Assembly (NCBI GenBank): GCA_965202585.1
Contig: OZ241833.1
Coordinates: 44,330,001-44,394,000, forward strand
Direction: 5' to 3'
From: Thalia democratica
Taxonomy: Eukaryota
Length of the DNA: 64,000 nucleotides
Part shown: in pieces, positions 1,219-59,693 of the stretch
Position numbering within the stretch: the stretch's first letter is position 1
Layout of the letters: each line of letters opens with the position of its first letter
The notes under the pieces: model-generated
Databases searched by the model: none
Told to the model about the DNA's origin: nothing
Seen by the model: the letters and a program-made list of their open reading frames with translations, nothing else
Made by a program: the position numbers and the translations under genes

Positions 1219-1305
1219 ATGGAAAAATGGGAGTTTCAGCTCTCTCCCAGGCAGATAGCACCCAGGTACCAAAGCCAAGCTCGCCGGTATTTTTCTATGA
1301 AGGAG
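1219..1305 (+). CDS. ANK2: Candidate distal first coding exon ([29 protein letters not shown])
   Basis: ATG at 1219, 29 open codons, consensus donor GAG|GTAAG, phase 0 matching exon 6569; its 3' end is echoed twice in the intron like other true exons. Confidence 0.55.
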
Positions 1306-4300
1306 GTAAGAATACTAATAATTAATTAAATTATTATTATTTTTGTAATCTAAGGTACCAAAGTCAAGTTCGCCGGTATTTTAGTTAAAAGAGGTAAAAT
1401 AAAAAATTAATAATCAGTTTTATTATTTTTTAATAGTCTAATGTATCAAAGTCAAGTTCATCGGTATTTTTGTGTGAAAGAGGTAAGACTATTATAATTT
1501 AAATACTATCAAAAACTTGCTTAATAGCTATTTTAAAAGAAGCAAAATGCATTTAACATCTTTTACAGTATAAAAAATATTTTTTCAGCATATTTTTAGA
1601 CTTAACTTGATATTTTGATTCAAAAATTTTCTCATTGTTACATCATGATTTACAAAGTTTATCCACTTTTTATCAGAAAACTGATGGTCATGACAGTATA
1701 TCTTTCGAATATAATGAAGTTTTGATATATTTAAAGTCATAATAGTTGTTTGAATTTTATTTAATCAGAAAATAAAACAAAAATTGTTTATAATTAGCAT
1801 AACCATGTTTTAACTCGTCCTTGTTTCATAAAAACATGAAATTTTCAACAGTCAGTGTATAAAAAATAGTTTTTTAATGACATTTGTTGTAACTTTATCA
1901 AAGTATTGAGTTGAAATTTGTTTTCAAAAATTAAGCTGTTGAACTTTAAATGTTAAGAAAACTACATAACCTTTATTCTTTTTACTTTTTAATTTTAATT
2001 GCTTAGTTTTTAAGGTTTTCGTTGCTTACTTGGTTTATACACAACAAAATCTTTCTAGTTTACATGTAAACAAAAAAAATCTATATTAAAGTAGAAAAAT
2101 TCTAAACATCATTTGTTCTGTTTTAACGTGAAAAAAACTTTTAGCACGTCAATAATTTGTTTTTTTTAAACTCTTAAAAACTATTTAGTCTATTAAGTGC
2201 AACTGTTTTATCATTTCTACTTGTGCAAAACGTATCAAGTTGAACTTGTGTATAACGAATGTGTAGGGATTAGTTAAGAATTGATAATTTTAATCAAAAG
2301 ATTAAATATGTCTGTTACATGTAAGCTTTTAAACTGCAAGTGATTTGTCTTAATTAAGTTTGTTTCTGTTGTCGTGCTTAAAATGCTTGAAAACTGATCT
2401 TTTATCTTAAACAAAATATTATTTTTTAATTTACTTAACACAACAAGACAGAAAACATATTCAAAATTTTTAAATACATGCAATTTAATTTTTATTAAAG
2501 TCGTAGATGGTGAAGAGTGTTTTATTTAATATTTCATTAATAATAAATGTACCTACGTACTTCGCTGTTTTAACAACGATATTTTATCAAATATTAATAA
2601 ATTTCTTGTTTTATGATCTTTAAATGCATTTCAATGCCATATTTGAAGGAGTTATAATTTTTTTTTCAAAGTAAAAAACTTATATAAACTTTTTTGCTCA
2701 AAACTAGTGCTATATGTTTTAAATTTAACTATAAAAAACTTATAGTTTTACATAATAAAATATGTTACAATACTTTAAACATAACTGCTGACTAATATTA
2801 AGAAAAAGTAATTTCAAAGTTTTTAAAACTTCTTTTTTTTGGGATTGAACACAAAAAAAAATCTAAGTTTATTTAACGTGAGCAAAAATTATTTACATTT
2901 GATAATATTTTATTAAAGCTGTGCAGATCAGATTATAAATTATTGATAATGATATGATTAGTCAGTGAATATAAAATTTATATCAATTAAAATTAGTTGC
3001 CTGTCTTACATATGTTCTGAAACCACGAGTACAAAGGTTGAACTTTCTTTTTTTAAGCTAAAACCGAGTACTGATAGCATAAAAATCAAGCTTTGTTAAC
3101 TATTTACTTATTTAAGGAAGGCTTACAACTAATTGAACTCAGTTAAACACAAAAATCGTAACAATAATTAAAATTGAAGTAAAATATTGCAAAAGTGCTC
3201 ACTGTTTATATTTTTTTATACATACCCAGAATTTTGCCACTAACTTACTAACGCAATGTTTATTAATTTTTACGTATCACTACTTCTTTCTTTTGAAATT
3301 AAATTAAAGTGAAATAAATGTAGTTATTACCATAAAAATTCTATGCAGTATCTCAGTTTTCCAACTTATTTTACCTATTTTATAGAAGTCGTCAAATGGT
3401 TTAAGCTTTATTGTATGCTACTTTAATAAAAGTTTTACGGCAGGATATTGAACTCTAACTATTGAAAAATTAGTATTTATGTGTATTGGAAATTTTTGAT
3501 GAGTCTATTTAACTATTATAAATAGAGTTTATTTTAAGTATTTATACAATTTAAAGGTTTTCAATTGAACTCAAACAACTATTAAATTTAAATAGTTTAT
3601 TTAAAAAACTTCAGTGAGTCTATTAAATAGGCAAAAACAAAGTTGTTCGAAATATTTACACAATTTGTAGCTTGGTCTGTTTTATTAAAGGTTTTACTTC
3701 TAAAATATTTTAAAACCCTGTATGTTAAGTCGTGGGCAAGTTTCAAAATTTGCTCTATGTTTTTTATTTAAGAAACAGGTTTAAATATTGAATTAAGTAA
3801 ATATTTTAAACTAAAATATACTATCAAAGTTATGCTACTTTATATCAAAATTAATTAAGTTGTCACTTGCACTCGTAAATTATCTTTGATTATTATATAA
3901 AGTTAATGTTTTTTTAGACTGTAACTTATGTAGGATGCAACGTTTTACAAAGTACAAATTAACTTTAGTGATAGAATTTATACGAGCTGTTTTATAGTAG
4001 TAACATACTACAATGTTAAATTTTGACTTTGAAACTGGCAACTCAGTGTTAATAAGTTCAAATGCATTGAAAACTATGCTATCACAACTTATGTGTGACA
4101 CTAATAAAATTTTATACTTTATACGTGAAAAAAACTTATAGTCTATTTCGAGTAAAAAACTAACAAACAAATTGTTTCGAAAAAGTATCGTCACCATACA
4201 TATCGCGTTTTATAAAACTTCCACGAGAGGTAGCTACAGCACATTACCTTTTGTTTTGATGAAACGACAGAAAAATTGAAAGTGTAAGCTACCGTACATT

Positions 4301-7300
4301 ATAATGTTATAATGGTAAAAGGAACTAAGTTCTTAGCTTTAATTTAAACAAACGGAACTTGGTTGTTGAAATATGGGTTTCTTGCATAAGTTTGGTTTTG
4401 TATAGAAATTGCGTATATTCATTTACATACTAGTTTTTGGTTATTTTAAACCTACTTTGTGCCACTAAATTTATGAAAATAGTTAATATTTTTTGTAACA
4501 CACAAAACAAACAGCGGTCTTATTTACTTTTAACTAAAAGTATATTTGATAACAATAAAACTGTTTATTTAAATTTTTATAAATATAAATTTCATGACTT
4601 AATACGCAATTCTATTTTGTCAGGTACATTTTTAGACTTTAAAGAAATTTATGAGCTTTTAAAAAAGATAACTTTCAACTGTAGTTGTTATATTGACCGT
4701 GACCATTGTGCTATGAAAAATTGTGCTATGAAAAAAAGGAACTACTATTACATACATGTAGTAATACATTTTTGAAAATCATTAAAAAAAAATTGTATGC
4801 GAATATCATGTTTATCCAGGTTAACTTCTGAATTTTAAAAAAGGTAGCAGATATTTTCTACCAAAAGGTAGTTTTAAAAAAATTAAAAAAATTAAAAAAC
4901 CTTAACTTTTACCTGGTGTCGTGTTATCGCGACCGTTTCCTCATTACAAAACACGAAAGCGCCATAAAAGCACCTGCAAGTAGTAAAAGAAGAAGAAGTG
5001 CCTGAATAATTAATAAACTCGAAATTGTGCATGAAAAAAGCAGCCAACGTACTTTAAAGCCAGCCATCAAGAGAAAAAGGCTGGAAAGGGGGAATCGGCA
5101 GCGCAAAGTTTCAAAATCGATCTGTGTTCAGAAAGTTTAGGAAGCGGGCTTTAAGTGTTCGGGCTTTTGTCGTTTGTTTGTTTTTATTGTGAAGTTTTTA
5201 GTGCGAAAAGAAATTTGTTTTTGTAAGCTGTAAGCATGATGGATAATTAAAAGTTAAACTTGGTTCATCTAAGTTTTAAATTGCTCAGTTTTGAGCATGC
5301 AGGAGCTTTTTGTTTTTAACAACTAGTTTTCAGCTTCTAAAAAAACTTGTTTATTTATTTTGCAAGAGTAAAGCTTAAACAAGGTATACCAATAAAAGTT
5401 TTTATTATTCAAATTTTTTTTAATTTTTTCAAAGTTTTAGTTAAAAACACTTATTTAATTTATTTTAAAATTCGGTTTCTGTTCAAAGCAGATTCTTTCT
5501 TATTTTTATAGCAACAGTTGAAATTTAAACACCAGAGCACCTAGTTTGGGAGCTACGTAACTAAAAAAAAAAAGAATATTTACTTTAAAAAGTGTTGAAT
5601 TTGTCTGCTAGTTTCAGTCGCGCGTATTTCAGCAAAGGGTGTGGCGATTGTATTGACAAAACAACAAAAAGATTCAAGCACCATGTTGAGCTTCAAGTGC
5701 GAGCAACAAATGAAGCAGACTTTTTTGTTGTGCAACTTTATATTGTCTCCAACAGCAAGTTTATTGTCGCAAGCTACTTTGAGTATTTTTGTACTTTGCT
5801 TGTCACTGTCTAAGAAGGGTGCTACAAAAGCGTGCTAGACTTGTTGCTTTCTTTTTTTAAAGACATGAATACACTTTTCTTTCAGCGTGACAAAAAGTCT
5901 GTTCAAATGTACTAAAAACTAGCTTATCTTGTGTAGTTTACTAGTAAAGTATTAGTGCTTTGTTTCAAATAAAACATTTTTTTAGTTTAATTTAGTTGAT
6001 TAGTGTTTTTAATTAAAAGCTGGTGGATAGCTGGTGCCAAAAAGCTATTTGTAAAAGTGACGTAATTGTCAGTTTGTGACGACAAAGTTGTTTGTGACAA
6101 AATTGTCGGTTTGTGACGACAAAATTGTTGGTGACAAAAATGGTGAGAACGAGTGAAACTTCGTCACTCTGTTCGTTTGTCAGCAATGTGAGTTGCGAGT
6201 AACTAAAATAAATAAACTTAAATAGGATAATAATAGCAATAGTTTATATGTTGTTAGCGTTTATATATGAGAACTTCGTTTAAAATTAGCAATAAAATGA
6301 ACAATTGAATAATACTTAGTAACTAAAAACTATTTCAAATTGATTTTCGACAAAAAAAAAACTCCAAAAAAAAAAACTAACTGTGTAACTATATATTATA
6401 AGAACGAAAAAAAAAAACTAAAATACCAATATCTTTAAATTAAAAATTGCTTCATCTTATCTAACTTTTAGTAGACTTCAAATAAGTATTATTGGAAAAG
6501 TTTATTGTTATTTTAATTCAAACTATAATTTTTCTCATGTTTCATAAAACTATTTATTTTTGTTATAGGGAGGAGGCGGCAGTCTTTTACGAGCAGCAAG
6601 AAGCGGAAATGTTGAAAAATTGATCAGCTTGTTGGATAATGACAATATAGATATACAGACTTCTAATAGTGTGAGTTTGAAAAAATATGAATACATACAT
6701 ATATATGTATTCTATAGTTTGTTGGAAAATGACAATATTGATATACAGACGTCTAATAGTGTAAGTTTAAAAATTAATAAATATAATTAGTCAGTTCGTT
6801 GGATAATGATAATATAGATATACAGACGTCTAACAGTGTGAGTTGAAATAGTAACATATATGATTAGTCAGTTTGTTGGATAATGATAATATTGATATAC
6901 AAACATCTAATAGTGTAAAGTATAAACAAATAACTTATTAAGTATTGCTTAGTATGTAACTATATTTGTAAGTAATCAGTTTACTGGATAATTATAACAA
7001 AGACATACAAACATAGACATACACACATCTATTAGTGTAAATTTGAAGTTATATATTGTATAGCATGTAATTTAACTGTGATAAATCAGTTTTTATGATA
7101 ATAATAATGTCGAAATACAAACTTCTAACAATGTGAGTTTAAACTAAATGTATAGTTAATTTAAGCTGAATGCATCTACTTTACTTGATAATTAAAATAT
7201 TTATATTTAAACTTGTAGTGAAGTAAATTGGTAAGTTGTAATGATTTTTGCAAAATTAAAAAGTTAGTTTGTTTTATTAACTAGCATAAGTTATTATGTT

Positions 7301-10300: not shown

Positions 10301-13300
10301 AGCGGCTGCGTTGTTGCTGCAGAACGATAACAATGCCGATCCCACTAATAAGGTAGGTGATTTATTGCACATAATGTATAAATCAGGATTTCATAAGGTA
10401 GGGAGCTTTGCTCTTATGTATTATAGGTACTGGTGTACAGTTTTTTGTAATGGACTAAAAGAAGCCTATGTATCATCTTAAAAATCTGTTAATTGATAAA
10501 AAAGAATCAATTAAATCATGCAACGTTTTCACAAACAAGCACTACGGCTTTAGTAACATAACTTAAAAATATTAACTTTGACTAAAACTATGACTAGTTG
10601 TATAATTGTTATTTAAATTAATTATTTCAAAATATTGTTTCATAAAATGTACAGTTTTTGTACACAGTAATAAAACGAATTTTTTACAGATGATGGTGAA
10701 CCGGACTACTGAGGTTAGTACTTTGTTATATTTTACACCTACTTAGTGTTTTCTTATATACAGCTTACAAAGATTTTTAAATAAATTGGTAGAACTTTAT
10801 ACTCACTAAAAGTGTTTTTAAGTTGGTACTTTAATAGACTAAAACCTTAAGCTTCTAATACTAAATATTTAATCAAATCATTATACAGAGTGGATTTACA
10901 GCACTACATATAGCTGCCCACTACGGAAATGTGAATGTAGCAACACTACTGCTGAACAGAGGCGCAGTGGTTGATTATGAAGCTAAAGTGAGTAAATACT
11001 TATTGTAAAATGCAAACAAATTTGGTAATTTGTTTATCTATACTTCAACCTCAATACGTATAACGTTGTAAATTTCCATACAAATTTATAAATATTAGTT
11101 TTTTTTTTACATCTACTCTATGAAGCACCATACTTAAAGAAAAATAAAGTAAAACAAAAAACTTAATCAAAATCCTAACATCAAGCATAAGTTTTGTAAG
11201 AGTTTTTTTTATGTTTAGAAACTAATCCAAAACTTTTTTTTCTATCAAATGTTGGGCTAACTAGTAAAAATAAGCTACTGAATACATAAACAAAAAAACC
11301 ACAGAGAAATCTACACAATTAAATATTTGAGACATTTTAAGAACCAAATATATGCAAAAGCAGTTTAACATCCATCTAAACCACCAACAGAGTGGAATAA
11401 CTCCATTGCACGTGGCAGCCAAGCGAGGTCACTCCAGGTTCTGCTCTTTGGTCATCCAGCACAACGGGCAGCCCTCCAAAGCGACCAAGGACGGTCTTGT
11501 GGCGTTGCATTGCGCTTCCAGGTCAGGGCATTCCCCCGTCGTGAAACTTTTGCTGGAACAGGAAACCACACCCAGACTGGCAAGAACTAAAGTTTGTTGT
11601 AAAACTATTTTAATTTGTTTTTTAACTTAGAAAGCTCACAAAAGTTTTTATTCTTAATTATTAAAACTGAGGGGTAAATCAGCTGCAAGTTTATTTATTT
11701 TTCTAATCATGTTTTAAAATAAATGACCTTTTCCAAGCATACTTATGTGAGCTAACTTCAGTCTCGTATAAGAGAATATTTTTTAATTGCACGTGTTGTT
11801 TCAGCCTAATTCTTAAAAACTAAACATTTAAGAGTTTTACTTTTCATTTGAATTTAAGTGTTGTTTGAGAAAAAGTACCAATATATTAGTTACATTTAAA
11901 AATTTTGAACAGAATAAGTTCACGACACGTGGTTACTCGTTTATTATTACTGATTTTGTTACTTAATTTTTTAGAACGGACTATCAGCATTACACATGGC
12001 AACTCAAGGTGGCCACGCCGATGTCGTGCAACTTTTATTGGAAGAAAAATTTCCTGTCGATGATATTACTTCGGTAATTTTGTTAATCTTTAAAAAAAGT
12101 TTACTTTGTAAAGAATTAAAAACAAAATGCTTAATTGTATGAACTTTATTTGTTTTGTTTCGCTTTATGTTTTCAACGTTAACAAACTTTAAGTAGTTAT
12201 ATACTTTTTTAATGTTAGCGCAATCTTTTTTAGTTTAATGTTCAATCTTAAAAATTAGGTTGTAAGAAAGGTAAATCTTTTATATATAAATATGTGATAA
12301 CTTCACACAGGATTACCTGAGCTCCCTACATATTGCTGCGCACAGCGGTTTCACAGGAATCGCTAAGTTGCTCCTATCAAACGGAGCTAATCCCAACAGG
12401 ACTGCTCTGGTTAGTGTTTTATTATTTTATACAAAGTTTATAAGCTGCAAGGCTTAGTTTAAGCTGTAAAATGTATATTAAAATGTAAAATTTACTTTAC
12501 TTGTTTATAATAATTAGGAATTATTTCACATTTTTGAAGTTTAGAACTTCCTTACTGAGTATTAATTATTCATAACTTTTGTATAAAACACGTTAGGATC
12601 AAATTAAGGTGTAAAATGCATTAAAGCTTATGCAACAGTTTTATATGGTTTCAAGTTCAAAACTACAAGTCTTATATACAGCAAATACCATTCTTATTAT
12701 TACATCAGGGGTTAACTTCTCGTTTTTCGGTTTTAAAATTTAGTATTTTAGAATTCTCTTGTGAGAATTATTTGATGCTTTTCACATATAAAAGCTTTTA
12801 ATTAAGTGTATAGTTGTACACTACATTTGAATGGTTTTTCTTGATAATCAACATTTAATTCAAATAAGCTGAAAATACTTTTAGTTGTTTAGAACTACTC
12901 TAGAGGGTATCAATAATTCATAAAGAGTGTAAAACTTGAGCGAGCGTTTAGTACTACGTAAACTACATAAATAAACAAATATATGTACATATTTATTTAT
13001 TCATATTCGTTTATTTTAATGCATTTTATTGCAAAATACTTATAAGTTGGTAAACAATTTTCTCCACAAAATTAATTGTAATTAAAAGTGCTAACTCACA
13101 TACTTATACTTCTCTCGCAAACCATTTTTAGTAGCTGAGATTAATAATTCATAACGATTGTAAAAACGGCTGCTCCAGCTCTTAGGTTAGGCTTAGATAA
13201 AAGATAAAAAGTAAACGGTTTTATGCATGTATACTACTAAAAAGTCGAATATTCTTAAAAAAGTCCAAAAAATTGACTAGGAGTTTTGTATTAAAAAAAC

Positions 13301-43300: not shown

Positions 43301-46300
43301 TGATCCATTTTTGATGAAAGCTAGTGAAAAAGTAACGAGTGTTGCAGATGAACTTGATTCTGAAAATGATAACACGCAAAGAAATTTTGAAAGCAAGTTT
43401 AACACTGAATATAATTCAGATAAAGTTAAAGAAGAAATTGAAAATGATACGTATAATGTTAGTACAGTAAGTGCAAGTAAAATCGAACATCCAGACAAAA
43501 CCAAAAAGTCGGACGTCGTTACCGATGATTATAAAATTGAAACTAAACAACAAATGACAAGTTCAACTAAAGAAAGTATGAATGCTAGTGAAAAACTAAC
43601 GGGTGAAACGGCTACAAATAAACTAGGTAACAACGAAGAAAGTTTTAAATCCAGCTTTAACATAGCAGATAGTTCAGTAATCAAAGTTAAAGAAGAACTT
43701 GAAAGTATTACGTACAATAGTAGTACAACAAAAGCAAGTAAAACCGAAATGCCTGACAAATCAAAAATGTTAGATGTAGTTTCCGATGATTCTAAGTTTG
43801 GAATTAAACAAGAAACGGCTAGTGTGAAACAAGCTCCTATTAATGCAGATAAAACAAACGATGAAAATGCATCTGAAAAAGCTGAAGTTGTTGATAATGG
43901 CGATTTAATGCTTGATCAAAACGTCTCAAACTCAAGTTTTTTAGATTCTGAAATGCTTGATAAAGTAGCACAAGACAAACCATTGACAGTAAAAAAATTC
44001 AAAACGTTGAGTATTGATACTAGCGCTGAAACTTTAAACAAATCTTATGAATGTTCAAGCGAAGTTTCTGCGTCACAATCTAAATATTTAGTTGAAAATA
44101 CTTTAAAAGATATTGATAATTGTAAAAACGAGTCAGTAAAAGGATCAAGTGATGATTTAAACGAAGAAACTATTAATGCAGATAAAACAAACGATGAAAA
44201 TGTATCTGACAAAGCTAAAGTTGTTGATGCTAGCGATTTAATGCTCGATCACAACGTCTCAAATAAAAGTTGTCTAGATTCTGGAAGGCTTGATAAAGTA
44301 GTACAAGACGAATCAATCATTGAAGAAAATGTCGAAACATTAAGTACTGGTGTAAGCGTTGAACCTTTATACGAAATTTGTAAAAAGTCAAGCAAAGTTT
44401 CTACGTCACAATCTGAAAATTTAGTTGAAAATACTTTAAGAGATAGTGAAAAACGTAAAGACGATTCAGCAAAAGAACTTATTAGTGGTTTTTTGAATGA
44501 ACAGAGTGTATCGAACAATGGAAGTAGTGATTTGAATAACGTAGAGGTTAAAACCTACGATTTAAATACTAAAAGTTCTGATAGCTTCCAAAATGAGAGT
44601 TTTAAAGCAACTAAAGCTTCAAATGATCATTATGAACCAAGTACAAGCGGTCTTGTCTCGCCTGAACAAGGAAACAACAATGACTATACATCAAACTTAG
44701 ACACAAAAAATGATTCAGTGAATAAACAATACACTTCGAAAGTAACTCCTGAAAATAGCGAAGATTCTGTAACCGAACACAACACTAGTTCCACGCTGGT
44801 TGATAAATTTGATGTGGCAGTGAGCTTTAATGATTTTGAAGCTTTTGATAGCAGCTCAAAAGTTGAACATGCTTCAACACCTACCGCAGAAAACAGTGTT
44901 GAAAAAGAAGTTGTCGAACGTGAATGCGTTGGTTTGGGGTCTGATACAAATAGTAACTCTACTATATATAAAGATTCGACGAGAAATTTTGAAGAGGTTT
45001 CGAGTGTGATCGAGCATGAAAGTCTTGCTACTGGAAGTAAAAATGAGAGTGAAACTTGTTTAGAGTCGAAGTCAAAGAATGAAAAAACTCAGTTTATTCA
45101 AAATACAGGTGAAGACACTGAAATTAGGTTGTCAAATGACTTAAACGAAAAAGTTTTTGGCAATGTTGACTTTTTAGGTGTTGAAACCATGAACAATGAT
45201 AAAAATGAAGTTAAAAACGCAGATTTAGTTTCAAATGAGGTTGAGTTTAAAGAACAAAATATTAGTGATGACGAATATAGCAAAAAAATATCAAATACTT
45301 CTAGTGTAACTAAACACTTAATAGAGGATTCAAAAAGTAAGAACGAATTTCTAGCACCAAAAAACTTTTCGGACAACGAAGACGCTAGTTCGGTAAAAAG
45401 TGCAGATTTTAATAAGTTTTTTTCAATCATTGAATCTAGTTCATTAATTAAAAGTGAAAACTTATTCAAAAATCCTTCTACCAGTAGTCGTTTGGACAAA
45501 GATGACAAAGCCGAAAGACCTACATCTGAAGAAAAGTCTACGGACTTTGACGAAAAAGTAACTGTACAAATTAAAGTATCTAGTGAAATGCAAAACGAAC
45601 AAGATATAGACGAAGACAGCTGTATGGACAGTCTGAAGCTAAAAAGCGGTGACGTGATAGACGAAGACTCCATTGACGTTAGCAAACAGCTTTCGGTGGA
45701 TTCCCTCGACAAAAACATGGCGGTTTCATCAGACTCCCTGAACGAGGTTACCATAGCTACCGACTCGCTGAGCGTTGGCAACGAGCTGTCACCCGGTTTC
45801 CAGGGAGCTTTTGACAGGTTCGATGATAGTGCTGAAAAATGCAAAGAAAGCAATGAAGTTTTAAGCTCGACAATTCATGATATTGTACAGTCACCTGACC
45901 TGATTAAATCAACAAATCGTAATCATGAGGCAGAGTTTGAAAGTTTAGACGTCGTAAACGATGCAGAAAAAGCAGATACTAATGTTTTAACGGGTAGACA
46001 GTGCATATTTGAAGAGTCTGCAGTCAAAACAAATGACGAGCTAAAAGGTTCTGGAATCTTACAAAGTGTTTACGAAAGCACGGGAAACAAAAATGACCAA
46101 ACATCAGGAAATGAAAATATTTTGCTGTCAGAAAACAGTAATAATGTGTTCGGCAACACAGCAGAATTTATTGGCACCGATGCAAGCGTTTTACAGAAAA
46201 ATGAACAAAGGGAAAGTTCTGACAGAGATAATAGTAGCTGCACGGATAAAGTGCAACAAGAAATTGCAAAAACTGAAACTCCAGCAGACAACTGGGGAGA

Positions 46301-49300
46301 GTTCGTAGAAAATCGCCTGTTTAAAAACGATCAAGAAACTTCAAACGTAACTAGTGATAAAACGGAAAATAATTCTGACAAAAATGATCTTCAACATGTG
46401 GTGAGCTTGAAAGAAATTCTGTTGGAATCGGAAGACTGCGAAAGTGACGAAAGTGAAGACAGTCCGTTGCTACTAACAAAAGCACAGAAAAATGTTGATA
46501 TCTCTGAAGCAAAATACTTGAGTGACTCAGACGGTAGTGAAACCGATAAACTGCTCCCAACTAAAAAGGACTATCCCCTCGACAGCTTGAAACCAGTTTA
46601 CGCTGAAAACCCTAGTTTGTTGCACAATGAGTACGAAGATTTAAAAAGTACCAAGAAAAACGAGCATGAACAAAGTAGCTCTTGTAAAGTCGGAATACCG
46701 AAAAGTCCATCCACGTATGATTTTAGCAAAACGTTTTTAGGTGAAAACTTCACTGACGAAACGAAATACGGTAATGCTTCTACTAATTTACAAAAGCAAG
46801 ATATTAAAGATTCAATGAGTGAAGGACTTAATCACGCTGAATTTAATCCAGAAGTCACGAGTCATAATATAGCAATTTCATCGCAAAAAGCGATTGAAAA
46901 GAGTACTGATAAGTTGCTTGAAGACTACGAAAGACCAGCTTTTTTAACAGACTTTAAAGAAAGTACTGATACTTTGGAGTGCAGTAAAGCAATAAGAAAA
47001 GGTCTGCAAAGCTTGAAAATGACCCAAAAAAGCTTCGACTCGGCCGCCGTGACACCAAAACTAGAACAACGTAGTTCGTCTAGTGACAAATCTCAAGCAA
47101 GTGTGGTTTTAGATGACATATCTTCGTCAAGCCTAGCAAGACATAACGTACCTTCTACAGGCTCGTTAAACAAGTTTAAAGATGAAATTTTTCCGGATGA
47201 TTTAGACGAAATACCTGCAAGCCCGTTACTTGAAACTACATATGACATATCTCCACTAACCGATGAAAGACCTATTGTAAGTTCACTGAACAGAACTACA
47301 TACGACATGTCTCCTACCAACGACAATGTACCTGCGAGTTCGTTGCATAGAACTACATATGACATATCTCCAGAGAACCTGATAACAGACGATAAACATA
47401 CTACAGGTACGCAAAAAAGACCTACATACGACATATCTCCTACCAACGATATTATACCTGCAAGCTCGTTGCATGAAACTACATATGACACATCTCCAGA
47501 CAGTCCGGTACGAGATGACAATCCTCCTGCCAACGACATACCCGCAAGCTCGTTGCATAGACCTACATGTGACACATCTCCAGACAGTCCGGTACGAAAT
47601 GACAATCCTCCTGCCAACGACATACCCGCAAGCTCGTTGCATAGACCTACATGTGACACTTCTCCAGGCAGTCCGGTACGAGATGACAATTCTCCTGCCA
47701 ACGACATACCTGCAAGCTCTTTGCACGGAAACAACCAAAGCGGTCGCGCGACGAGCGTCAGTCCCGACAATCTGCACGGAACCCACAAGGGTTCCATCGA
47801 CGATCTGAGGGCAACCAGTTCGGTGAACATCGCAGACGCGTTTGATTCGCTGAAAAGTGCAGAAGTTGCGGATTGTTTGGAGGAGCGCAAGAGTGGAAGC
47901 TCGTCAGAAAGGAAACCTTCGGAGAGCACAGACTCGACGAAAACGGCAGTGGCTGTCCCGTCGAGCGAGCCCCGGTCTTCCGAAAGCACGTCCCTGGTCG
48001 GGAGCTACAACGCCGATTTCGACAACGGGGATTTCCCGAAACAGAAGGAAGAGGACGAGTACATGTCGATGGGGCGCGAGTCGAGCTACTCGAACCTGGA
48101 GGACTCGGTTGCCTCGCAACCGCTGCAGGCCATCCCTGAGAACGAGGTTCTCTCGCCTCTCTCGAAAAGCTGGGGATTCCTGTCGGACGAGGAGAGCGAC
48201 GAGCAGAAGGAGCAGCACATGCGCAGCTTCACGGAGAAATTCTCCCAGTTCGTCGCCACCGTAAACGTCGATGCTCCTTTAGATTCTCCGTCCACAGTCG
48301 TCAGTCAGAAAGACAACATGACACTTCAACTGCAGCCTAGTAGTGACGTCCAAGTTGTTGGAAAGTCGCCGATGTCGACATCTTCCATCAGTAGCTATTT
48401 GGAATTGGAGAAGGTGGCGTTCGAGTCGACCAACGAGGACTACGTGTACCTGAGCGGGCACCACGGGGTAATACCCGAGAAAGAAACGAATATTAATGAC
48501 AACGAATCGTTTGCAACCAGCGCCAGCTTCACCGACTCGATAATGTCCGAGCAGATCTTTCACACCACTTCCTTCGAGGAGCTGGACTGCAGAAGCGTGA
48601 CTAGTGACGTCACAATGATAAAGAAGAAGCCGAGGAGCAAGATTCCGGTGCTGAGGGAGCAGAGGTCGTTGAGGAGCTCGAAGTCGAGCAATGTCAGCAA
48701 GAAATCGGTTGGTAGTAGGTTGGCATCAGCAACCAAGGCGTCTAGTAGCAGATCTTTAGCATCTAAGACGAGGCAAAGAAGCTTACACGATCGAACGACG
48801 CCGAAACGAGCAGTAAAAGCTAAAAAAGACCTCAACAAGAACGTTGTGGAAAGGCCTGTTAGGACGCAAAAATCAAAACCGCCTGTAAAGCAGTCTAGCA
48901 GCGGCAAAACGAAAACAAGCGTGGAAAAAACCCCCGTTAAGAAACCGGAATCCAAGAAAACGTTGGCGAAGAAGCAGCTTCAGTCAGTCAACAAGCTGTC
49001 CTCACCTCGCCCCATGTCCCCACTTTCCCGCTCATCCTCCAACAACTCTCTCAAGTCGGCTCGCTCCAGGAGCATGGTCTCTTCGCCGGGGAACCCCGAA
49101 GACAGGTCAATCACGCTGAAGGGCCAGGCTCAAGCGGGCAAAAAGTACATAGCGTTGAAGGAAGGCGTGTACACCTACAAGATGTCTTTACAGGAGGAAA
49201 AAGAGAGGCAGGTCCAGTCTCCGATGAGCCAGGACTCGATGGGCTCGAGTCAGAATGTGTCGGCGGTTCTCGGGGGCAGTGCTAACTTGAAGAGCAAGAG

Positions 49301-52300
49301 CGGTTCTTTTTTAGCTGATTGCCTGGGGTCAGGCGGTGAGGTTTTGAAGGGGGATTTTCCCGTAAATAAAACCGCTGCCCCAGGCAACCACAAGTTCGTG
49401 TCGAAGATTCCGAGGTCCAACTTCAACGAGAACTCGAACGTAACGACTCGAAAAGAAATCAAAAAGGAATTATTAGCTACTTTAGAGAAAATATCTGACT
49501 CAACAAACGTATCAACTAGAAGAAAAATGAAAAAGGAATTATTAGTACCTTTGGAAAAAAAATCTGAATCAACAAAGCCAAACGTAAAACCAACAAAGAA
49601 ATCCAAAAAAGAGCCTTCTAATACCGAAAAAGTTCCGAAAAAGCGCGCAAAAATTCTGTCGGTAAAACGAAGCAAGCCACCAGCCCACAAACGGATAATC
49701 GAGATATCGGCGCCGATCAGAAAAGGCAATTATTCGGTGTTGTTATGTATGCTAGGTGGCGTAATAGCGAGCTCGTTTTGTCGCCTGTATGTTTCTCGTT
49801 GTGTTGCCTTGCAGTTGACATATTTCACATCTAGTTGTTTCCATATGAGTAATGTGAACACCGTGTATTCAGTCCCTCATTTGAACTTTTAAGTTTATTG
49901 AATGTATATTGTGTAAGACCTTGTTGTAAACTGTTGTTGCTTGTTTACAGTCGTATAACTTATGTACTTGTTTGTTTTTTTTTTTCAGCATTACTTGTTG
50001 TTTTTTATGCACTAGTAATGGGGCTTTGTTGTAAACTACTGTTGTTTGTTTTGTTTGTGTTGTGTCATTTATGTTGTACTACTATACTTTGTTGCTTTTT
50101 TATTTAATATGATATACTAACCATGATTCAAAAACTTACCAGGCAATATTACTATCAATCTTATGTATGAAAAAGCTTTTTTTGTTTGAACTGTTTAACT
50201 CGTATTGAATCCTTTTAAATGCTTTTTTTGTTTGTAACTTTTTTAGATGTATCCGGCCAAAAAACTGTTAAATGTATATCCGACCAAAACTGAGAAAGTA
50301 CCGTATTATTTTTGGTTTACTGCTATATCTTACTTTTATCCGACCAAATGTACATCAAATCACTGTCAACATTAAAATCTTAGCTTTAAAAAATCAATTA
50401 CTGTTCCAATTAGTTTTTGTTACTTTAACATTAAAAAACATTTGTCAATTTTATCCTACTAAAAAGTATCATTGTCAAAATGTACTGTCTTTTTTCATAC
50501 GAGAAGAAAAAGTTGTTGCAATATCTTTTTACCCAAACACCATTTACTTCGCAGTCATTAATTTCTTCTTATTAGCAAACAAACTAACTTTCCAATTTGA
50601 ACAATTCAGAGGGTCTCAAACCCCAACGAGACGTGAGACCCCAACTCATTCGCGTCGCCACGGGGGTGGGGATCCAGTGGCCGCGGTTGGCAAGGCAACT
50701 GGAAATCCCCGGAGAGAGAGTTAGGAGGATCCAGATGGAGATAGACTCCTCAGATTTCGTGGGTCAGTGCGTTGCCATGTTTGATGCTTGGAAGGAAGGG
50801 AAAGATGAGGGTGATGAGAAAGTTCTTGGTGAGAAATAATTACATTACAGAAATAGACGATAAAATTTAATTAGTTTTGCTTTGTTTATAAGGTATTGTA
50901 TAAATTTTAAAACACATTTATTAAAGTCTCTCTTTGTTTTCATAACTATTTTTGTTAAAAATATTTTAATTATACCAACAAGTATTTTAGTTACACTACT
51001 AAGTATAAAGATACGTTTTTTAACTTTGTTACCTGAAGTTCAGAAAAGTTTGCTTGTTTTATCGAAACAAGCTCTACCAGAACAACTTATTCAAAAATAA
51101 ATATCTTTCATTATTTTATCTATGTAAACATTTGCTGTTAACTTAACTATTTTTTGTAAATATAATAAAAAAAAATTAAGTATTGTTCATATTTTTCCAT
51201 GCTTTAGCTATGCCTTTAGTTTATATACTCTTAACCTTTACAGACACTGAGTTGAAAGATGCACTCACTAAAATCGGTCAAAACGAACTAGCACAAAGCT
51301 TTGATAAAAATGAAAGTGATGAGACATTTGAAGCAAACCAGTCAATATCATTAGACTCTCATGACCTATCAGGTTACAAATACCTTTTATTTTGGCTCTA
51401 ACCATGTGTATAGCTAAAGTTATCGTTTGATTATTAATCCTCTTCGTCTTGTTTTTAATCTATCTAATATTTCGAACATTCTCGCTATTGACAATGTCTT
51501 TGGTTATTATTTATGACAAGTAGTTTCATAATCAAGCTAGCTTTACTCAAACTTGCTTGTATTTTAAACATTTTAATTTTCATAATTCTCCTAAATTTAG
51601 GTTCTGTGAGTAGATTTTTTAGAACTTTTTTTGAATAATTTTTATCATTTAACAGCATTCAACGCATTGGAAGCAGAGTTGGGATCACCTCGATCTAACG
51701 CCAACTTGCACGTCAGTTCTCCTTATCCGCACAGGAAACCCTCTCTACCGCCTCAAGTAGATGTCGACGCTACAAAGGTTTGTGTTGTTAACTGTTAGTT
51801 AAATTACATTAAATGTAAGCTGTTAAATTTTGTAGGTTTAGTTTAAAAACCTGAGTACTTTTCCATACAAGTAACGTCAATAGTTGATAGCTTTAAATAG
51901 TTGCATATAAGTATTTCAAATGTGTGATATTATACTAAGTTTATATTTTTGTAAGTTAAGATCACTAAGACATCAATTTTGTAATGTTTATACCTCTAAA
52001 TTCTCCCACATTATCAACAAAACTAAAAAAAAGAATCGTTTTTCAACGATCAGAACTTTTATACTTACTCTATTTGAAAGGCAGAAATATAAGAATAATC
52101 TAAAAACTTTTATAACTCAAATATTAAATAGTAAAACAAATATTTAAAAACTCTTCATTTTTTTCAAAAGGCTGAAGAAGAAGACGAGAACATCAGTATT
52201 CAGAACGAATCTTCAGTTTGCAGCGGATCAATTACTGGATACGATTCAGATAAACCTCATTTCGTATATCTGCCAGAAAATGAAGGTTAATTAAATAAAA

Positions 52301-54123
52301 TAAATATTTAATGATATTTGAAATTATTTAAGTTTAATGACTGGATACGACTCAGATAAACCTCATTTCGTATATTTGCCCGAAAATAAAGGTAAAAGTT
52401 AATAAACAAAGTATTTAAAGGTATTTCAAATTGTTTAAGTTTAATGACTGAATACGGTTCAGACAAACCTCATTCGTATATTTGCCCGAAAGTAAAGGTA
52501 AAAGTAATTCTTGAATTAAAGTTTTCTGTTTGTTATAAGGATGTAGTATATAGATTAGAATTATTAAGTAAGTCATATATCTAAGGATCAATGAAAAAAG
52601 AAAAAAACATAAAATAAACAAACTTTCAGGTGAGACATCTTCTGCACAGGAAGACGAAAATGGTTCAAGGTTAGTACTTTTTTTGTTTAAACTAAATTAT
52701 AAAGTTTTATCCAACTAACTGAGTATAAATTTGCGCATTGTAAGCCTTTAATTTAGTTCATCATTGTATTTTAGAGTTGTTAAGAAAACGCATATAAATC
52801 AAGCCATAACTAAATTAAACAAACATAACTATTCCATTGTTGTACTTATATTTCAGTCATTTTCTTTTTTTGTTCTCTAGTTATCATAAGGCTATTTGGT
52901 TTTATATAAACATTGTGTTGAAACTTTGTTCTACTTTTAACCAATTTGTTTATTAATTTTTGAAACTGTTAGTAATTTTATTTCAATTAATTTTTTCATC
53001 ACAGCAACGACAGCAATGACAAAAACTCGACAACAAACAGTCAGAACTCGGTGTGCAGCGAAATTAACAACAAAGGTTAGCATGTTTGTTTACAGATTTT
53101 TATATTTTTCTTATCAAAAATCACCAGTATTTGACTTAAGATAGTAGTGTTGAAAACCAGTGTGCTATACTAAGTAGTTTAAAATGTCACAGCCATAAAA
53201 TAAATGTATACTATATTGAGATCTCTTACCGAAAAGCTAACAAAGAAAAGGCTTAAACGATTTTATTTTACAACACATTACAAGCACAAAGTTTATGATT
53301 TGCTTTATTGCTTTTGACACTAAAATTTTACAGTTTTTATTGTTTCTTTGTACTTTGCTATTGGGATTATTAGCTTTAGCCTCTTTAAAGATAATAAAGC
53401 TGCATTGAGAGTGGTCTTGTTTGTCAAAAACAAAACAACAAAAATACAGATATTAAAACTTTAAAGTGTGCATCTTTAAGGTATTTTAAAAAAAAGTTAC
53501 AAGTCTAGTTTGAAGTAAACAAAAACTTCGTGATAGTTTAACATGAATGTTTACTACAAGTACCGTTGTTCCACAGTTATACAATTAGCTAAACACAGTC
53601 TAGTTGAAAACTATAGTTCTGAGATGTTTATATATATATAACTTATTTAACTCCATGGTTTATGATGCAAACTAGCAAAACGTACTAATATATTTTTAGA
53701 AATAGAGAACGAAACGAAGGAAGAGTATGTAGACGCGTCCTTGGAAGATATCCACAAGACAAACTCCGTAGAAGACGAAGGAAACTCTGATGGAGACATC
53801 AACGAAGGGAAGGCAAGCTCCGAGGAAGAAGTCGACATCAGCTCGAGATACACCTTCACAGTTCAGGAGGTTGGTGCTGAAAAAAAACGTTGGTTTTTAT
53901 TATAATATTTTTTTATACAACAATTATCAAAATTAAAGTAAAAATGATATTTTTATTTTAAGTTCTTTCATTAAAAAAGAGAAGTATGCCTTAACTAATA
54001 TTAAATATTAGTTTAATGGGTGTTGTAGAAAATTAGTTTGCTAGCTTTTTTTTTTAAACTAAAGTGAACTTTTAAAACTAAAGTTCAAGTGTTTGATAAT
54101 CAAGTTTTGTATAACAGAAATGA
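1219..54123 (+). CDS. ANK2: Multi-exon canonical ankyrin gene (24 ANK repeats, ZU5-ZU5-UPA, giant exon, death domain, C-terminal tail); likely pro-orthologue of vertebrate ANK1/2/3, most ANK2-like
   Basis: Hand-spliced GT-AG exons join in frame from repeat 1 to the tail. Peptides match ankyrin hallmarks: [69 protein letters not shown]. The 5' and 3' terminal exons are less certain. Confidence 0.96.
4915..5240. promoter_or_regulatory. CpG-rich island, possible proximal promoter or 5'UTR
   Basis: GC- and CpG-rich patch in very AT-rich DNA about 0.9 kb upstream of the candidate first exon at 6140; compositional evidence only. Confidence 0.25.
6140..6187 (+). CDS. ANK2: Candidate proximal first coding exon ([16 protein letters not shown])
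   Basis: AAAAATGG start, 16 codons, consensus donor AAT|GTGAGT, phase 0 into exon 6569. Confidence 0.55.
6569..6670 (+). CDS. ANK2: ANK repeat 1 exon ([34 protein letters not shown])
   Basis: tag|...|gtgagt, 102 nt, phase 0/0. Confidence 0.93.
6716..7138 (+). repeat. Five intronic tandem copies of the last 15 codons plus donor of exon 6569-6670
   Basis: Copies start at 6716, 6793, 6870, 6978 and 7088; each ends in agt/aat followed by gtgagt, gtaagt, gtaaag or gtaaat. Confidence 0.9.
8419..8517 (+). CDS. ANK2: ANK repeat 2 exon ([33 protein letters not shown])
   Basis: cag|...|gtagtt, 99 nt. Confidence 0.95.
9428..9526 (+). CDS. ANK2: ANK repeat 3 exon ([33 protein letters not shown])
   Basis: cag|...|gtttgt, 99 nt. 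Confidence 0.95.
9769..9867 (+). CDS. ANK2: ANK repeat 4 exon ([33 protein letters not shown])
   Basis: cag|...|gtatat, 99 nt. Confidence 0.95.
10167..10352 (+). CDS. ANK2: ANK repeats 5-6 exon ([11 protein letters not shown]...[31 protein letters not shown])
   Basis: cag|...|gtaggt, 186 nt, 62 codons. Confidence 0.96.
10690..10713 (+). CDS. ANK2: 24-nt microexon MMVNRTTE
   Basis: ttttacag|ATGATGGTGAACCGGACTACTGAG|gttagt, phase 0/0; same peptide as the vertebrate ankyrin-B insert between repeats 6 and 7 (from memory). Confidence 0.9.
10889..10987 (+). CDS. ANK2: ANK repeat 7 exon ([33 protein letters not shown])
   Basis: cag|...|gtgagt, 99 nt. Confidence 0.96.
11391..11591 (+). CDS. ANK2: ANK repeats 8-9 exon ([14 protein letters not shown]...TPRLARTK)
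   Basis: cag|...|gtttgt, 201 nt. Confidence 0.95.
11975..12073 (+). CDS. ANK2: ANK repeat 10 exon ([33 protein letters not shown])
   Basis: tag|...|gtaatt, 99 nt. Confidence 0.95.
12311..12409 (+). CDS. ANK2: ANK repeat 11 exon ([33 protein letters not shown])
   Basis: cag|...|gttagt, 99 nt. Confidence 0.95.
13747..13845 (+). CDS. ANK2: ANK repeat 12 exon ([33 protein letters not shown])
   Basis: cag|...|gttagt, 99 nt. Confidence 0.95.
14741..14839 (+). CDS. ANK2: ANK repeat 13 exon ([33 protein letters not shown])
   Basis: cag|...|gtcagt, 99 nt. Confidence 0.95.
15375..15473 (+). CDS. ANK2: ANK repeat 14 exon ([33 protein letters not shown])
   Basis: cag|...|gtgaat, 99 nt. Confidence 0.95.
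16126..16194 (+). CDS. ANK2: ANK repeat 15, first part ([23 protein letters not shown])
   Basis: aag|...|gtgagt, 69 nt; AAG acceptor. Confidence 0.9.
17454..17582 (+). CDS. ANK2: End of ANK repeat 15 plus repeat 16 ([24 protein letters not shown]...LATK)
   Basis: cag|...|gtgggt, 129 nt. Confidence 0.95.
18166..18264 (+). CDS. ANK2: ANK repeat 17 exon ([33 protein letters not shown])
   Basis: cag|...|gtaaga, 99 nt. Confidence 0.95.
18517..18615 (+). CDS. ANK2: ANK repeat 18 exon ([33 protein letters not shown])
   Basis: cag|...|gttttt (weak donor), 99 nt. Confidence 0.93.
18906..19036 (+). CDS. ANK2: ANK repeat 19 plus start of 20 ([14 protein letters not shown]...[10 protein letters not shown])
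   Basis: cag|...AG|gtaatt, 131 nt, ends in phase 2. Confidence 0.93.
19304..19370 (+). CDS. ANK2: End of ANK repeat 20 ([23 protein letters not shown])
   Basis: cag|G...|gttaga, 67 nt, phase 2/0. Confidence 0.92.
20710..20812 (+). CDS. ANK2: ANK repeat 21 exon ([34 protein letters not shown])
   Basis: cag|...TCAG|gtttga, 103 nt, ends in phase 1. Confidence 0.93.
21193..21287 (+). CDS. ANK2: ANK repeat 22 exon ([32 protein letters not shown])
   Basis: cag|GT...|gttaga, 95 nt, phase 1/0. Confidence 0.93.
21590..21688 (+). CDS. ANK2: ANK repeat 23 exon ([33 protein letters not shown])
   Basis: cag|...|gtcagt, 99 nt. Confidence 0.96.
21904..21996 (+). CDS. ANK2: ANK repeat 24 exon ([31 protein letters not shown])
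   Basis: cag|...|gttagt, 93 nt. Confidence 0.95.
23734..23812 (+). CDS. ANK2: Linker exon ([26 protein letters not shown])
   Basis: tag|...G|gtagtg, 79 nt; VPET motif of the ankyrin autoinhibitory linker. Confidence 0.92.
25604..25703 (+). CDS. ANK2: Linker exon ([33 protein letters not shown])
   Basis: cag|...|gtaagt, 100 nt, phase 1/2; KELGDDS motif. Confidence 0.92.
26310..26426 (+). CDS. ANK2: Linker exon ([39 protein letters not shown])
   Basis: cag|...|gttggt, 117 nt, symmetric phase 2/2 (skippable). Confidence 0.8.
26813..27061 (+). CDS. ANK2: ZU5-A exon ([32 protein letters not shown]...GPHGTSFL)
   Basis: cag|...GA|gtgagg, 249 nt; DARGG spectrin-binding motif. Confidence 0.96.
29064..29212 (+). 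CDS. ANK2: ZU5-A exon ([34 protein letters not shown]...)
   Basis: cag|...G|gttgtt, 149 nt, phase 2/1. Confidence 0.95.
29503..29661 (+). repeat. Two intronic copies of the acceptor plus first 18 codons of exon 29714
   Basis: cag|cactaaaagtcggggagaaa at 29503 and cag|cgctcgaagtcggggagaaa at 29606; period about 104 nt. Confidence 0.9.
29714..29928 (+). CDS. ANK2: ZU5-A/ZU5-B exon ([31 protein letters not shown]...[15 protein letters not shown])
   Basis: cag|...|gtaagc, 215 nt, phase 1/0. Confidence 0.95.
30033..30086 (+). repeat. Intronic copy of the last 16 codons plus donor of exon 29714-29928
   Basis: Encodes identical [16 protein letters not shown] followed by gtaagt; 7 differences, all synonymous. 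Confidence 0.92.
30683..30812 (+). CDS. ANK2: ZU5-B exon ([14 protein letters not shown]...[22 protein letters not shown])
   Basis: aag|...G|gtacat, 130 nt. Confidence 0.95.
31054..31125 (+). CDS. ANK2: ZU5-B exon ([24 protein letters not shown])
   Basis: tag|...G|gtattt, 72 nt; LRLLCSI motif. Confidence 0.93.
31333..31429 (+). CDS. ANK2: ZU5-B exon ([32 protein letters not shown])
   Basis: tag|...AG|gtaaat, 97 nt. Confidence 0.96.
31687..31854 (+). CDS. ANK2: ZU5-B/UPA exon ([11 protein letters not shown]...[11 protein letters not shown]...VRVFCTTEK)
   Basis: cag|...AG|gtaatt, 168 nt. Confidence 0.96.
33878..34070 (+). CDS. ANK2: UPA exon ([26 protein letters not shown]...ENQMQMVLK)
   Basis: cag|...|gtttgt, 193 nt. 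Confidence 0.95.
34339..34467 (+). CDS. ANK2: UPA exon ([15 protein letters not shown]...[13 protein letters not shown])
   Basis: cag|...|gtaaat, 129 nt; PCGRL and LNITLP motifs. Confidence 0.95.
35034..35090 (+). CDS. ANK2: 57-nt exon ([19 protein letters not shown])
   Basis: cag|...CAG|gttgtt, phase 0/0, acidic peptide at the expected post-UPA position. Confidence 0.7.
35864..35921 (+). CDS. ANK2: 58-nt exon before the giant exon ([19 protein letters not shown])
   Basis: cag|...G|gtagtt, phase 0/1; supplies the phase needed by both the giant exon and the death-domain exon. Confidence 0.8.
36532..49725 (+). CDS. ANK2: Giant ankyrin exon, about 13.2 kb / 4,400 aa, S/E/D/K-rich and probably largely disordered
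   Basis: Lies in the 4468-aa ORF; acceptor gcatcag|TG in phase 1 at 36532. The 3' end is uncertain: GC donor after 49725, GT donor after 49755, or read-through to the stop at 49892. Confidence 0.9.
40860..41600 (+). repeat. Degenerate coding repeats with KF(S/N/D/G)F(E/D/G) and (V/T)(T/A)SP(K/E) motifs
   Basis: Protein track: KLDFEE, KLNFP, RFSFGE, KFSFES, KFNFES, KFSFDN, KFDFES, KPNFGE, KFGFED interleaved with VTSPK, VASPR, ATSPK, VASPE and VTSPE. Confidence 0.75.
42820..43085 (+). repeat. Two coding copies of an about 39-aa unit ([18 protein letters not shown])
   Basis: cttttgataaagc(a/g)caagtgaacagtca at about 42841 and 42955. Confidence 0.85.
43837..44490 (+). repeat. Two coding copies of an about 110-aa unit ([10 protein letters not shown]...LVENTL)
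   Basis: ctattaatgcagataaaacaaacgatgaaaatg at about 43837 and 44170. Confidence 0.85.
47200..47730 (+). repeat. Coding tandem array of T(Y/C)D(I/M/T)SP units; last three near-identical with an 84-nt period
   Basis: [21 protein letters not shown](D/N)DNPPAN repeats and five earlier TYDxSP variants. Confidence 0.9.
50610..50828 (+). CDS. ANK2: Death domain exon ([33 protein letters not shown]...[11 protein letters not shown]...)
   Basis: cag|AG...G|gtgaga, 219 nt, phase 1/1; W-x-x-LARQL death-domain signature. Confidence 0.93.
51244..51372 (+). CDS. ANK2: Death domain end exon ([20 protein letters not shown]...)
   Basis: cag|...G|gttaca, 129 nt. Confidence 0.88.
51656..51777 (+). CDS. ANK2: C-terminal exon ([41 protein letters not shown])
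   Basis: cag|...|gtttgt, 122 nt, phase 1/0. Confidence 0.82.
52171..52285 (+). CDS. ANK2: C-terminal exon ([38 protein letters not shown])
   Basis: aag|...G|gttaat, 115 nt; 3' end echoed twice. Confidence 0.82.
52340..52503 (+). repeat. Two intronic copies of the last 52 nt plus donor of exon 52171-52285
   Basis: Copies at 52340 and 52447, period 107 nt. Confidence 0.9.
52630..52669 (+). CDS. ANK2: 40-nt C-terminal exon ([13 protein letters not shown])
   Basis: cag|...AG|gttagt, phase 1/2. Confidence 0.72.
53005..53075 (+). CDS. ANK2: 71-nt C-terminal exon ([24 protein letters not shown])
   Basis: cag|...G|gttagc, phase 2/1. Confidence 0.72.
53700..53869 (+). CDS. ANK2: Acidic C-terminal exon ([20 protein letters not shown]...SRYTFTVQE)
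   Basis: tag|...GAG|gttggt, 170 nt, phase 1/0; read-through would stop 12 codons later. Confidence 0.78.
54118..54123 (+). CDS. ANK2: Possible terminal exon start (K-stop), followed by 3'UTR
   Basis: ataacag|AAATGA in phase 0; AATAAA near 54309; no independent support. Confidence 0.3.
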   Translation, partial: K

Positions 54124-59400: not shown

Positions 59401-59693
59401 AAAAGTATTAAGTTTAACTTATAAATGCTTCTGAAAGTACATAGTTATTAACACTTAAGTATATTAGTCAATGTAAATTTTTATTTAAATAAATGTTTAT
59501 TTAAATAAGCATTCTATGTATAGCTAAAAGTCATTTGAAATGATAAGGTGAATAAAAGTAAAACTTTTCTATCGTGTGACTAAAACTAAAACTAAAAGAT
59601 TATTCAAATTTCACTAAAACTAAAACTGCGGCCCGCGAGGACTTCGTAAACTTGAAATTTGGACCGCGACCACCAACTGCCTGCCGACCCCTG
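56438..59693 (-). mobile_element. Decayed hAT (Charlie/SPIN-like) DNA transposon, 3,256 bp
   Basis: TIRs caggggtcggcaaac (56438) and ctgccgacccctg (59681-59693); exact 8-bp TSD gtttaaat on both sides; subterminal tgcggcccgcg repeats; transposase relic on the minus strand. Confidence 0.92.
58102..58224 (-). pseudogene. hAT transposase relic (TDRKTIAHLRIFVRDVFTNFDILVELLDLVPTRSTTIGEIL)
   Basis: Hand translation resembles the Charlie/GTF2IRD2-type segment STD..AQL.IFVR..D.NF...EELL.LVP...TT.GE; flanking sequence carries stops. Confidence 0.75.

Follow-up and report, generated by a model that had tools for sequence, protein, structure and literature searches.

Along a single gene, the ends of exons recur in the adjacent introns together with their splice sites, and these intronic copies, here called echoes, differ from the exon largely at third codon positions. 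The question raised by this locus is how DNA lying in an intron can diverge from an exon in the manner of a coding sequence. The initial annotation had offered three mechanisms: (a) that each echo is the exon end of another allele, (b) that silent sites of exons are rewritten faster than intron DNA, or (c) that echoes move repeatedly into and out of the coding position.

Echo arrays along a giant ankyrin gene

The window, by which we mean the whole 64,000-nt stretch of DNA analysed, contains one large plus-strand gene in AT-rich surroundings, with a GC content of about 25% outside exons. This gene (1219-53900, plus strand) comprises ANK-repeat, ZU5/UPA, 13.4-kb giant and death-domain exons, and the exon translations matched the Pfam families Ank, ZU5, UPA_2 and Death in a profile search. 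The giant exon (36486-49892) is a 4468-aa open reading frame located between the UPA exons and the death-domain exon. Judged from its sequence, the gene is a giant ankyrin. The GC fraction is 0.33-0.58 in exons and about 0.25 in introns. Exon 1 would be best read from the ATG at 1219, its phase-0 end at 1305 joining the phase-0 exon 2 (6569-6670).

The giant exon has in-frame tandem repeats of its own (40881-41423, 42833-43031, 43422-44469 and 47211-47725), with periods of 84, 114, 126, 132-138, 261 and 333 nt and Ser/Pro/Thr-rich repeats in the product; a homologue search with this exon returned no matches, and an Rfam search gave none either. Downstream of the ankyrin gene lies an open frame of 115 codons (61456-61800) that matches a RING finger weakly (zf-RING_2, E 0.002) and probably belongs to a neighbouring gene. 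A GC-rich element, which looks like a dispersed repeat of the SINE or MITE type, occurs twice (56440-56560 and about 59620-59700) and contains the motif GGGGTCGGCAAACTGCGGCCCGCGGGCC.

Echoes were detected by repeat search, self-blastn (same strand, offsets of 30-900 nt) and pairwise alignments. At 11 exon edges, one to five intronic copies of the exon end and its splice site were found 77-230 nt apart; the nearest copy lies at 77-162 nt, or at 227 nt for the acceptor at about 15375-15387. All nine edges named in the initial annotation (seven donors and two acceptors) were recovered with these approaches, and the junction scan described below added donor 29217 and the acceptor at about 15375-15387. 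All arrays are on the plus strand, and differences are given below in the order of codon positions 1/2/3.

The donor of exon 1 (1305; array 1264-1505) is followed by echoes at 1353-1411 and 1443-1505, spaced by 89 and 88 nt, with 2/3/5 changes; the first echo carries a 1-nt gap and an in-frame TAG. The exon 2 donor (6670; array 6618-7154) has five echoes, at 6716, 6793, 6870, 6964-7054 and 7085, with spacings of 90, 77, 77, about 100 and about 100 nt and 3/4/16 changes, copy 5 being interrupted by an insertion. The acceptor at about 15375-15387 (array 15141-15400) has one echo at 15141-15173, with a scan z of 4.8 and a uniform 1/2/1 distribution of differences, and acceptor 19304 (array 19149-19333; z 10.1) has two, at 19196-19239, with a 1-nt gap, and at 19149-19170. 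Two echoes also follow donor 20812 (array 20764-21023; 4/3/9 changes), the first (20857-20910) having GC in place of GT and the second (20937-21023) a 1-nt deletion. For donor 25703 (array 25655-25871), the single echo at 25817-25871 shows 4/1/10 differences and an in-frame TAA, and for donor 29217 (array 29175-29308; z 8.3) the echo at 29260-29308 can be compared robustly over 37 nt, with 2/0/6. Acceptor 29714 (array 29494-29765) is preceded by echoes at 29565-29660 and 29494-29557, spaced by 103 and 105 nt. Donor 29928 (array 29881-30469) has an echo at 30033-30085, with all seven differences at third positions, and a short second echo at 30436-30469. Donor 31854 (array 31830-32030) has one echo at 31971-32030 with a single exonic difference, at a second position. 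Lastly, donor 52285 (array 52230-52502) has echoes at 52336-52442 and 52443-52502 with a period of 106-107 nt and 2/3/4 changes, the second bearing a 1-nt deletion.

In three of these arrays the whole unit, exon and intron parts together, could be aligned from copy to copy (52285, 106-107 nt; exon 2, 77 nt; 29714, 103-105 nt), and these are therefore true tandem repeats; at 25703, 29928 and 31854 the junction segment alone is still alignable. GT is retained in 15 of the 16 donor-side echoes and CAG in both 29714 echoes. As previously proposed, divergence mostly grows with distance from the exon, the exception being 20812; our alignments reproduced this trend.

Some further observations concern single edges. 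At 52285 both echoes have GTAAAA, a stronger donor than the live GTTAAT, read-through of the live donor meets an immediate stop (GGT TAA), and both echoes start with an in-frame ATG that the exon does not have. A weak acceptor-side echo was seen at 11896-11938 relative to 11963-12005 (z 4.9), with AGT for the TCA of the exon, both encoding serine; this alignment is too weak to build on.

Junction preference and codon-position structure

The initial annotation had placed these duplications specifically at exon edges. We scanned the 82 junctions (41 donors and 41 acceptors) of an approximate exon map, scoring each junction 55-mer against the flanking 700 nt and against its own composition-matched null of 150 unrelated intron windows. 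A z above 4 was obtained for 9 of 41 donors and 4 of 41 acceptors, so that within this gene 13 of 82 junctions scored as duplicated, as compared with 2 of 400 intronic control 55-mers, both of which lie within the exon 2 array. Duplications are thus about 30 times commoner at junctions than inside introns. We also simulated uniform tandem duplications of 75-160 nt in which dead DNA decays everywhere and the live exon changes at third positions only; junction-type pairs made up 24% of the detectable pairs. The junction preference is real and large, and the longer detectability of half-frozen pairs is insufficient as its cause. A few local tandem duplications were seen away from known exon edges: a pair with a 358-nt period outside the gene (62890-63432), a pair with a 37-nt period in intron 1 (6057-6142) and a pair with a 136-nt period directly upstream of the start codon (1021-1202).

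The reported third-position counts could be reproduced: 7/7 at 29928, 13/14 for copies 2-4 of the exon 2 array (4/4, 4/5 and 5/5) and 10/15 at 25703. These are, however, the most extreme sets, and others lie near the null, with third-position shares of 5/10 for exon 1, 9/16 at 20812, 7/13 at 29714 and 4/9 at 52285. Pooled over nine sets, pairwise differences amount to 24/21/85 (65% at third positions), or 20/18/62 (62%) when counted as events, each variable site being entered once per extra state. In our null, a dead copy changes everywhere, with G/C one to three times as mutable as A/T, and the live exon changes only synonymously; each live lineage is paired with a single dead one or, alternatively, the echoes form a ladder. 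This null expects 43-47% of differences at third positions, within the 40-50% estimated earlier, and a real excess above it remains (z 3.1-4.0). Taken singly, only the exon 2 (P 0.02), 25703 (P 0.04) and 29928 (P 0.01) sets depart from the null.

Since some arrays include intron sequence that was duplicated along with the exon end, rates could be compared within the same units. Per base class, third positions change at 1.14 times the rate of the co-duplicated intron overall (G/C, 0.54 versus 0.50; A/T, 0.39 versus 0.25), and positions 1 and 2 change at 0.37 times the intron rate, below the 0.5 or more expected under the simple model. The excess is driven by four arrays: exon 2, 29928, 25703 and 29217. 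Copies 1-4 of exon 2 show eight or nine variable third positions versus one change at positions 1 and 2, while their 32-nt intron parts differ by 22%, and third-position states among the copies are mosaic (ATA/ATT and ACT/ACG/ACA). The 29928 echo has no change in 28-32 sites at positions 1 and 2, compared with 5-7 at third positions, and at 29217 six of eight differences fall at third positions. A modest third-position excess in these four arrays is left unaccounted for by the simple model.

Three mutational causes of the excess were rejected. CpG sites changed no more than other G/C (0.15 versus 0.23 at positions 1 and 2; 0.57 versus 0.50 at position 3), a split for which exon 1 was read in the frame of the ATG at 1227 rather than 1219, so that few of about 400 sites were misclassed. 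Strand asymmetry of A/T changes was not found, intron A changing at 0.25 and T at 0.26. A bias from G/C to A/T acting on GC3-rich codons is already within the null, and is insufficient.

Origin of the codon-like divergence

We then considered which lineage had changed. Seven echoes carry a frameshift, an insertion or an in-frame stop. In the arrays with at least two echoes, changes private to one echo are distributed 9:12:20 over positions 1/2/3, and differences from the exon that are common to all echoes 3:3:14; the third-position excess therefore arose mainly on the live-exon lineage. Differences between echoes, counted by hand on the alignments, are uniform (3:1:3 at 29714, 0:3:2 at 52285 and 3:3:4 at 20812). 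The two 29714 echoes have non-synonymous changes in common and hence a dead common ancestor. Echoes decay as dead DNA.

An outgroup was provided by L001, a 663-nt TARA Oceans scaffold that was the sole match to the 71-aa ZU5 exon and comes from a relative present in marine plankton samples. Aligned against positions 29056-29931 of the window, it contains orthologues of the exon ending at 29217 and of the exon starting at 29714, with 87-88% exon identity, 4/1/23 differences over the three codon positions and a third-position divergence of 32%. Its intron is 220 nt long versus 498 nt here, with about 25 nt upstream of the acceptor conserved, and an echo of the 29714 acceptor was looked for in this orthologous intron and is absent. 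The 29714 echoes would thus be specific to the lineage studied here, or have been lost in the relative. Polarised in this way, three of the six third-position differences at 29217 are live-exon changes, the echo agreeing with L001, and the changes of the echo itself fall at two first and three third positions. At 29714, GTT>GTA and CGA>CGC are live-exon changes. At 29928, three differences belong to the echo lineage and one to the exon lineage, and three are ambiguous. Two degenerate DNA patterns searched in JGI metagenomes gave no matches.

These data are probably best explained by junction-spanning minisatellites of the 'mirage' type, combined with selection on the live exon and high silent polymorphism. 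According to this model, a segment of about 75-160 nt would be duplicated in tandem, in some cases more than once, by slippage, unequal exchange or templated repair; it would comprise 20-55 nt from one end of an exon, the adjoining splice site and the beginning of the intron. Of the resulting copies, the one still continuous with the remainder of the exon would alone be spliced into mRNA, and the others would decay as intronic DNA. The live copy would be frozen at non-synonymous sites and free at silent ones, while a dead copy may change everywhere; divergence would look codon-like mainly because the live exon is selected and the dead copies are free. Moreover, recombination would effectively unlink an echo 100 nt away from the adjacent exon allele, so that the live exon beside an echo would be an effectively random allele of a very polymorphic species, adding purely silent divergence. 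We infer, rather than observe, both the mechanism of duplication and the size of the polymorphism term. The model gives no reason for the roughly 30-fold targeting of junctions.

Polymorphism could be assessed using short reads from run X1, which is from the same species as the window and is heterozygous, with 174 variable places in 5981 nt; at many of these sites the alternative base is at half depth and is fixed in X3, a sister taxon. For the second haplotype of X1, a contig tied to the unique part of exon 2 (6581-6652) has other bases at 6613, 6616 and 6628, each of them a third codon position. In the sister taxon the live exon 2 departs at 6628 and 6643, also third positions, and the variant bases at 6628 and 6643 are those that the echoes carry. 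The measured diversity is about 3% of intron places in X1 and 3 of 24 third positions of one exon, perhaps about 12% at silent sites. We estimate that a silent diversity of 0.04-0.12 would lift the expected third-position share to 0.52-0.60. The measured polymorphism fills only part of the third-position gap, and very few sites were measured. Mechanism (a) is plausible and partly supported in a general form, in which an echo is set against a live exon taken from a highly polymorphic population, exon 2 having third-position variants of which two match the echo; the allelic divergence seen is too small for the whole story. In intron 1, at 1647-4381, heterozygous sites are dense in X1 (for instance 10 in 3968-4138), with the alternative base fixed in the sister taxon, which suggests very high diversity or introgression.

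A broader reading would have junction duplication as an active, targeted process, tied for example to transcription and splicing or to repair, that seeds arrays at a sizeable fraction of junctions; selection would keep some echoes competent for coding or splicing, and the arrays would be a standing store from which exon ends could be renewed and new alternative splice sites or introns could arise. We consider this unlikely.

The narrower proposal that some echoes are under purifying selection for an encodable peptide, as alternative exon ends, alternative 5' splice sites or alternative first exons, draws on several features of the arrays. Copies 2-4 of exon 2 keep the peptide (13 of their 14 differences being at third positions), the 29928 echo preserves 16 of 16 residues, and exon 2 through copy 2 forms an open frame at the 90-nt spacing. 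The 52285 echoes start with an in-frame ATG and have donors (GTAAAA) nearer to consensus than the live GTTAAT, and GT is kept at all but one of the 16 donor-side echoes. However, no canonical splicing path puts echoes in frame. In-frame paths translating echoes were sought by hand at exon 2, 29928 and 29714, and none was found: an AG before the exon 2 copies yields a 43-nt exon with a shifted frame, and no AG lies between the in-frame stop at 30021-30023 and position 30033, where the 29928 echo starts. The frameshifts or stops in seven echoes and the spread of private echo changes over all codon positions also argue against selection on the peptide.

RNA evidence bears on the same proposal. 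Run X4, an RNA run from the same species (47 million letters), yielded a 546-nt contig that starts exactly at the exon 2 acceptor (6569), runs to 6670 and continues into exon 3 (near 8419). Joining exon 2 to exon 3 in this way, the contig shows that X4 is RNA and that the live donor at 6670 is used; the contig has no branch at this donor, and this is the sole junction checked by RNA. That the contig begins at this acceptor hints at alternative exons upstream. A search of RNA runs for the ZU5 region gave no match. Sequences able to pair, as RNA, with the exon 2 units were also looked for, with only chance-level AT-rich inverted matches. Given a single unbranched contig using the live donor, and the broken frames, we give peptide selection on echoes a low probability.

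We hold it equally improbable that turnover is faster at the silent sites of live exons than in dead intronic DNA, as in mechanism (b), either because a fixation bias holds GC3 above an AT-rich mutational equilibrium or because conversion from echo to exon is tolerated only if silent. In its favour, judged against the decay of echoes at positions 1 and 2, silent changes on the live lineage look by our estimate 2-3 fold too many; exon 2 of the sister taxon differs at 4-5 of 34 third positions, versus about 4% in flanking intron contigs; and exon GC (0.33-0.58) is far above the intron value of about 0.25. Yet the third-position rate per base class approximates that of the co-duplicated intron, divergence in the intron is underestimated, the comparison being confined to contigs above a likeness threshold, and population-genetic theory holds that a fixation bias at equilibrium reduces silent turnover. 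With third positions changing at 1.14 times the co-duplicated intron rate per base class, faster exon turnover is not required.

Mechanism (c), by which frequent unequal exchange would expose each unit to selection intermittently as echoes enter and leave the coding position, is very improbable. Mirage arrays in amphioxus are unstable in length (PMC3087553), the exon 2 array is rearranged in the sister taxon, and the mosaic alternation of ATA and ATT among exon 2 copies suggests exchange. Selection on the first unit is nevertheless powerless over mutations in units that stay intronic, and broken frames persist; the seven broken echoes and the 9:12:20 spread of private changes make this a poor fit to the present copies. 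Indirect, 'hazard' selection through exchange from echo to exon was ruled out by argument, as the rate it needs would homogenise the units, which differ by 22-27% at silent and intronic sites.

Finally, an assembly artefact in which haplotypes were merged in tandem, raised initially as a condition that would undo the pattern, might be suspected from the heterozygosity of the sample but is extremely improbable, since a 925-nt short-read contig of run X1 (which may be the same individual) equals 6631-7260 with 0 differences, the sister taxon X3 carries a homologous exon 2 array with its units in another order (joint 6845>6728), the units differ by 10-30%, far beyond allelic divergence, and there are as many as five units per array.

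Relation to known junction repeats

The initial annotation knew of no named description of this pattern, but names exist. 'Mirages' in amphioxus are tandem duplications that resemble minisatellites and span exon/intron boundaries (PMC3087553, PMC3902484), first described, according to these two papers, by Canestro et al. 2002 (NAR). They are known from Adh3, the globins BflGb6 and BflGb9, troponin C and PGBD5; their units of 10-160 bp occur at 5' and 3' edges, mostly with AG/GT, and splicing is normal (PMC3087553, PMC3902484). Haplotypes vary in copy number, and how the arrays arise is described as unclear; neither paper takes up how divergence is distributed over codon positions (PMC3087553, PMC3902484).

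The preferred reading, mirage-type repeats with a selected live copy, agrees with this description in several respects. The units studied here span the exon/intron boundary, with the live junction as one terminal unit, and carry copies of AG/GT. Array length and arrangement are unstable, the order of units being different in X3 and the L001 intron having 220 nt and no echo versus 498 nt. Differences were also found. Unit identity is 81-100% in amphioxus mirages versus 65-90% here, the present arrays being more decayed, and a single gene here has 13 of its 82 junctions affected, while mirages are known from a few lancelet genes. Unlike in amphioxus, the host is an AT-rich marine animal with introns of about 25% GC, and is probably no lancelet. 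The GC content of Branchiostoma is about 41%, and the intron GC fraction of about 0.25 found here therefore argues against a Branchiostoma-type host.

Other systems are less similar. In human F7, the first element of a 37-bp VNTR in intron 7 (IVS7) spans the exon 7/intron 7 boundary, so that the authentic donor is followed by silent pseudo-donors (PMC1557585). Repeated pseudo-donors after a live donor are also seen here, and in F7 the upstream site is used; the F7 repeat, however, is a single polymorphic locus, and its pseudo-sites are identical to the authentic donor. Introns can be created or extended by internal tandem duplication, as in the Rogers model and in Gao and Lynch 2009 (as cited in PMC3087553; also PMC3265369, PMC4974935). 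As in the Rogers model, local duplication with splice signals gives redundant sites and exon-derived sequence turns intronic. Unlike that model, no new intron is formed: the introns are old, since L001 shares the exon borders found here at 29217 and 29714 and the ANK exons belong to the conserved 99-nt type. Tandem clusters of mutually exclusive exons resemble the arrays in their local tandem copies with peptide-conserving divergence, but the units here are exon ends of 20-55 nt only, 77-110 nt apart and without another splice site in frame; a cluster of this kind was ruled out, as use of an AG shifts the frame and stops and frameshifts are present. The structure is of a known kind, in a host that is probably new.

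The apparently unnamed pattern is thus a 'mirage' structure, and its analysis indicates that codon-structured divergence between an exon and an intronic copy is, by itself, no proof of function. Selection on the live copy accounts for most of the codon structure, to which high silent polymorphism can add. Of remaining interest are the roughly 30-fold preference for junctions and the modest silent surplus over the simple model. The arrays form a natural internal clock, in which the evolution of exon silent sites can be set against that of the intron.
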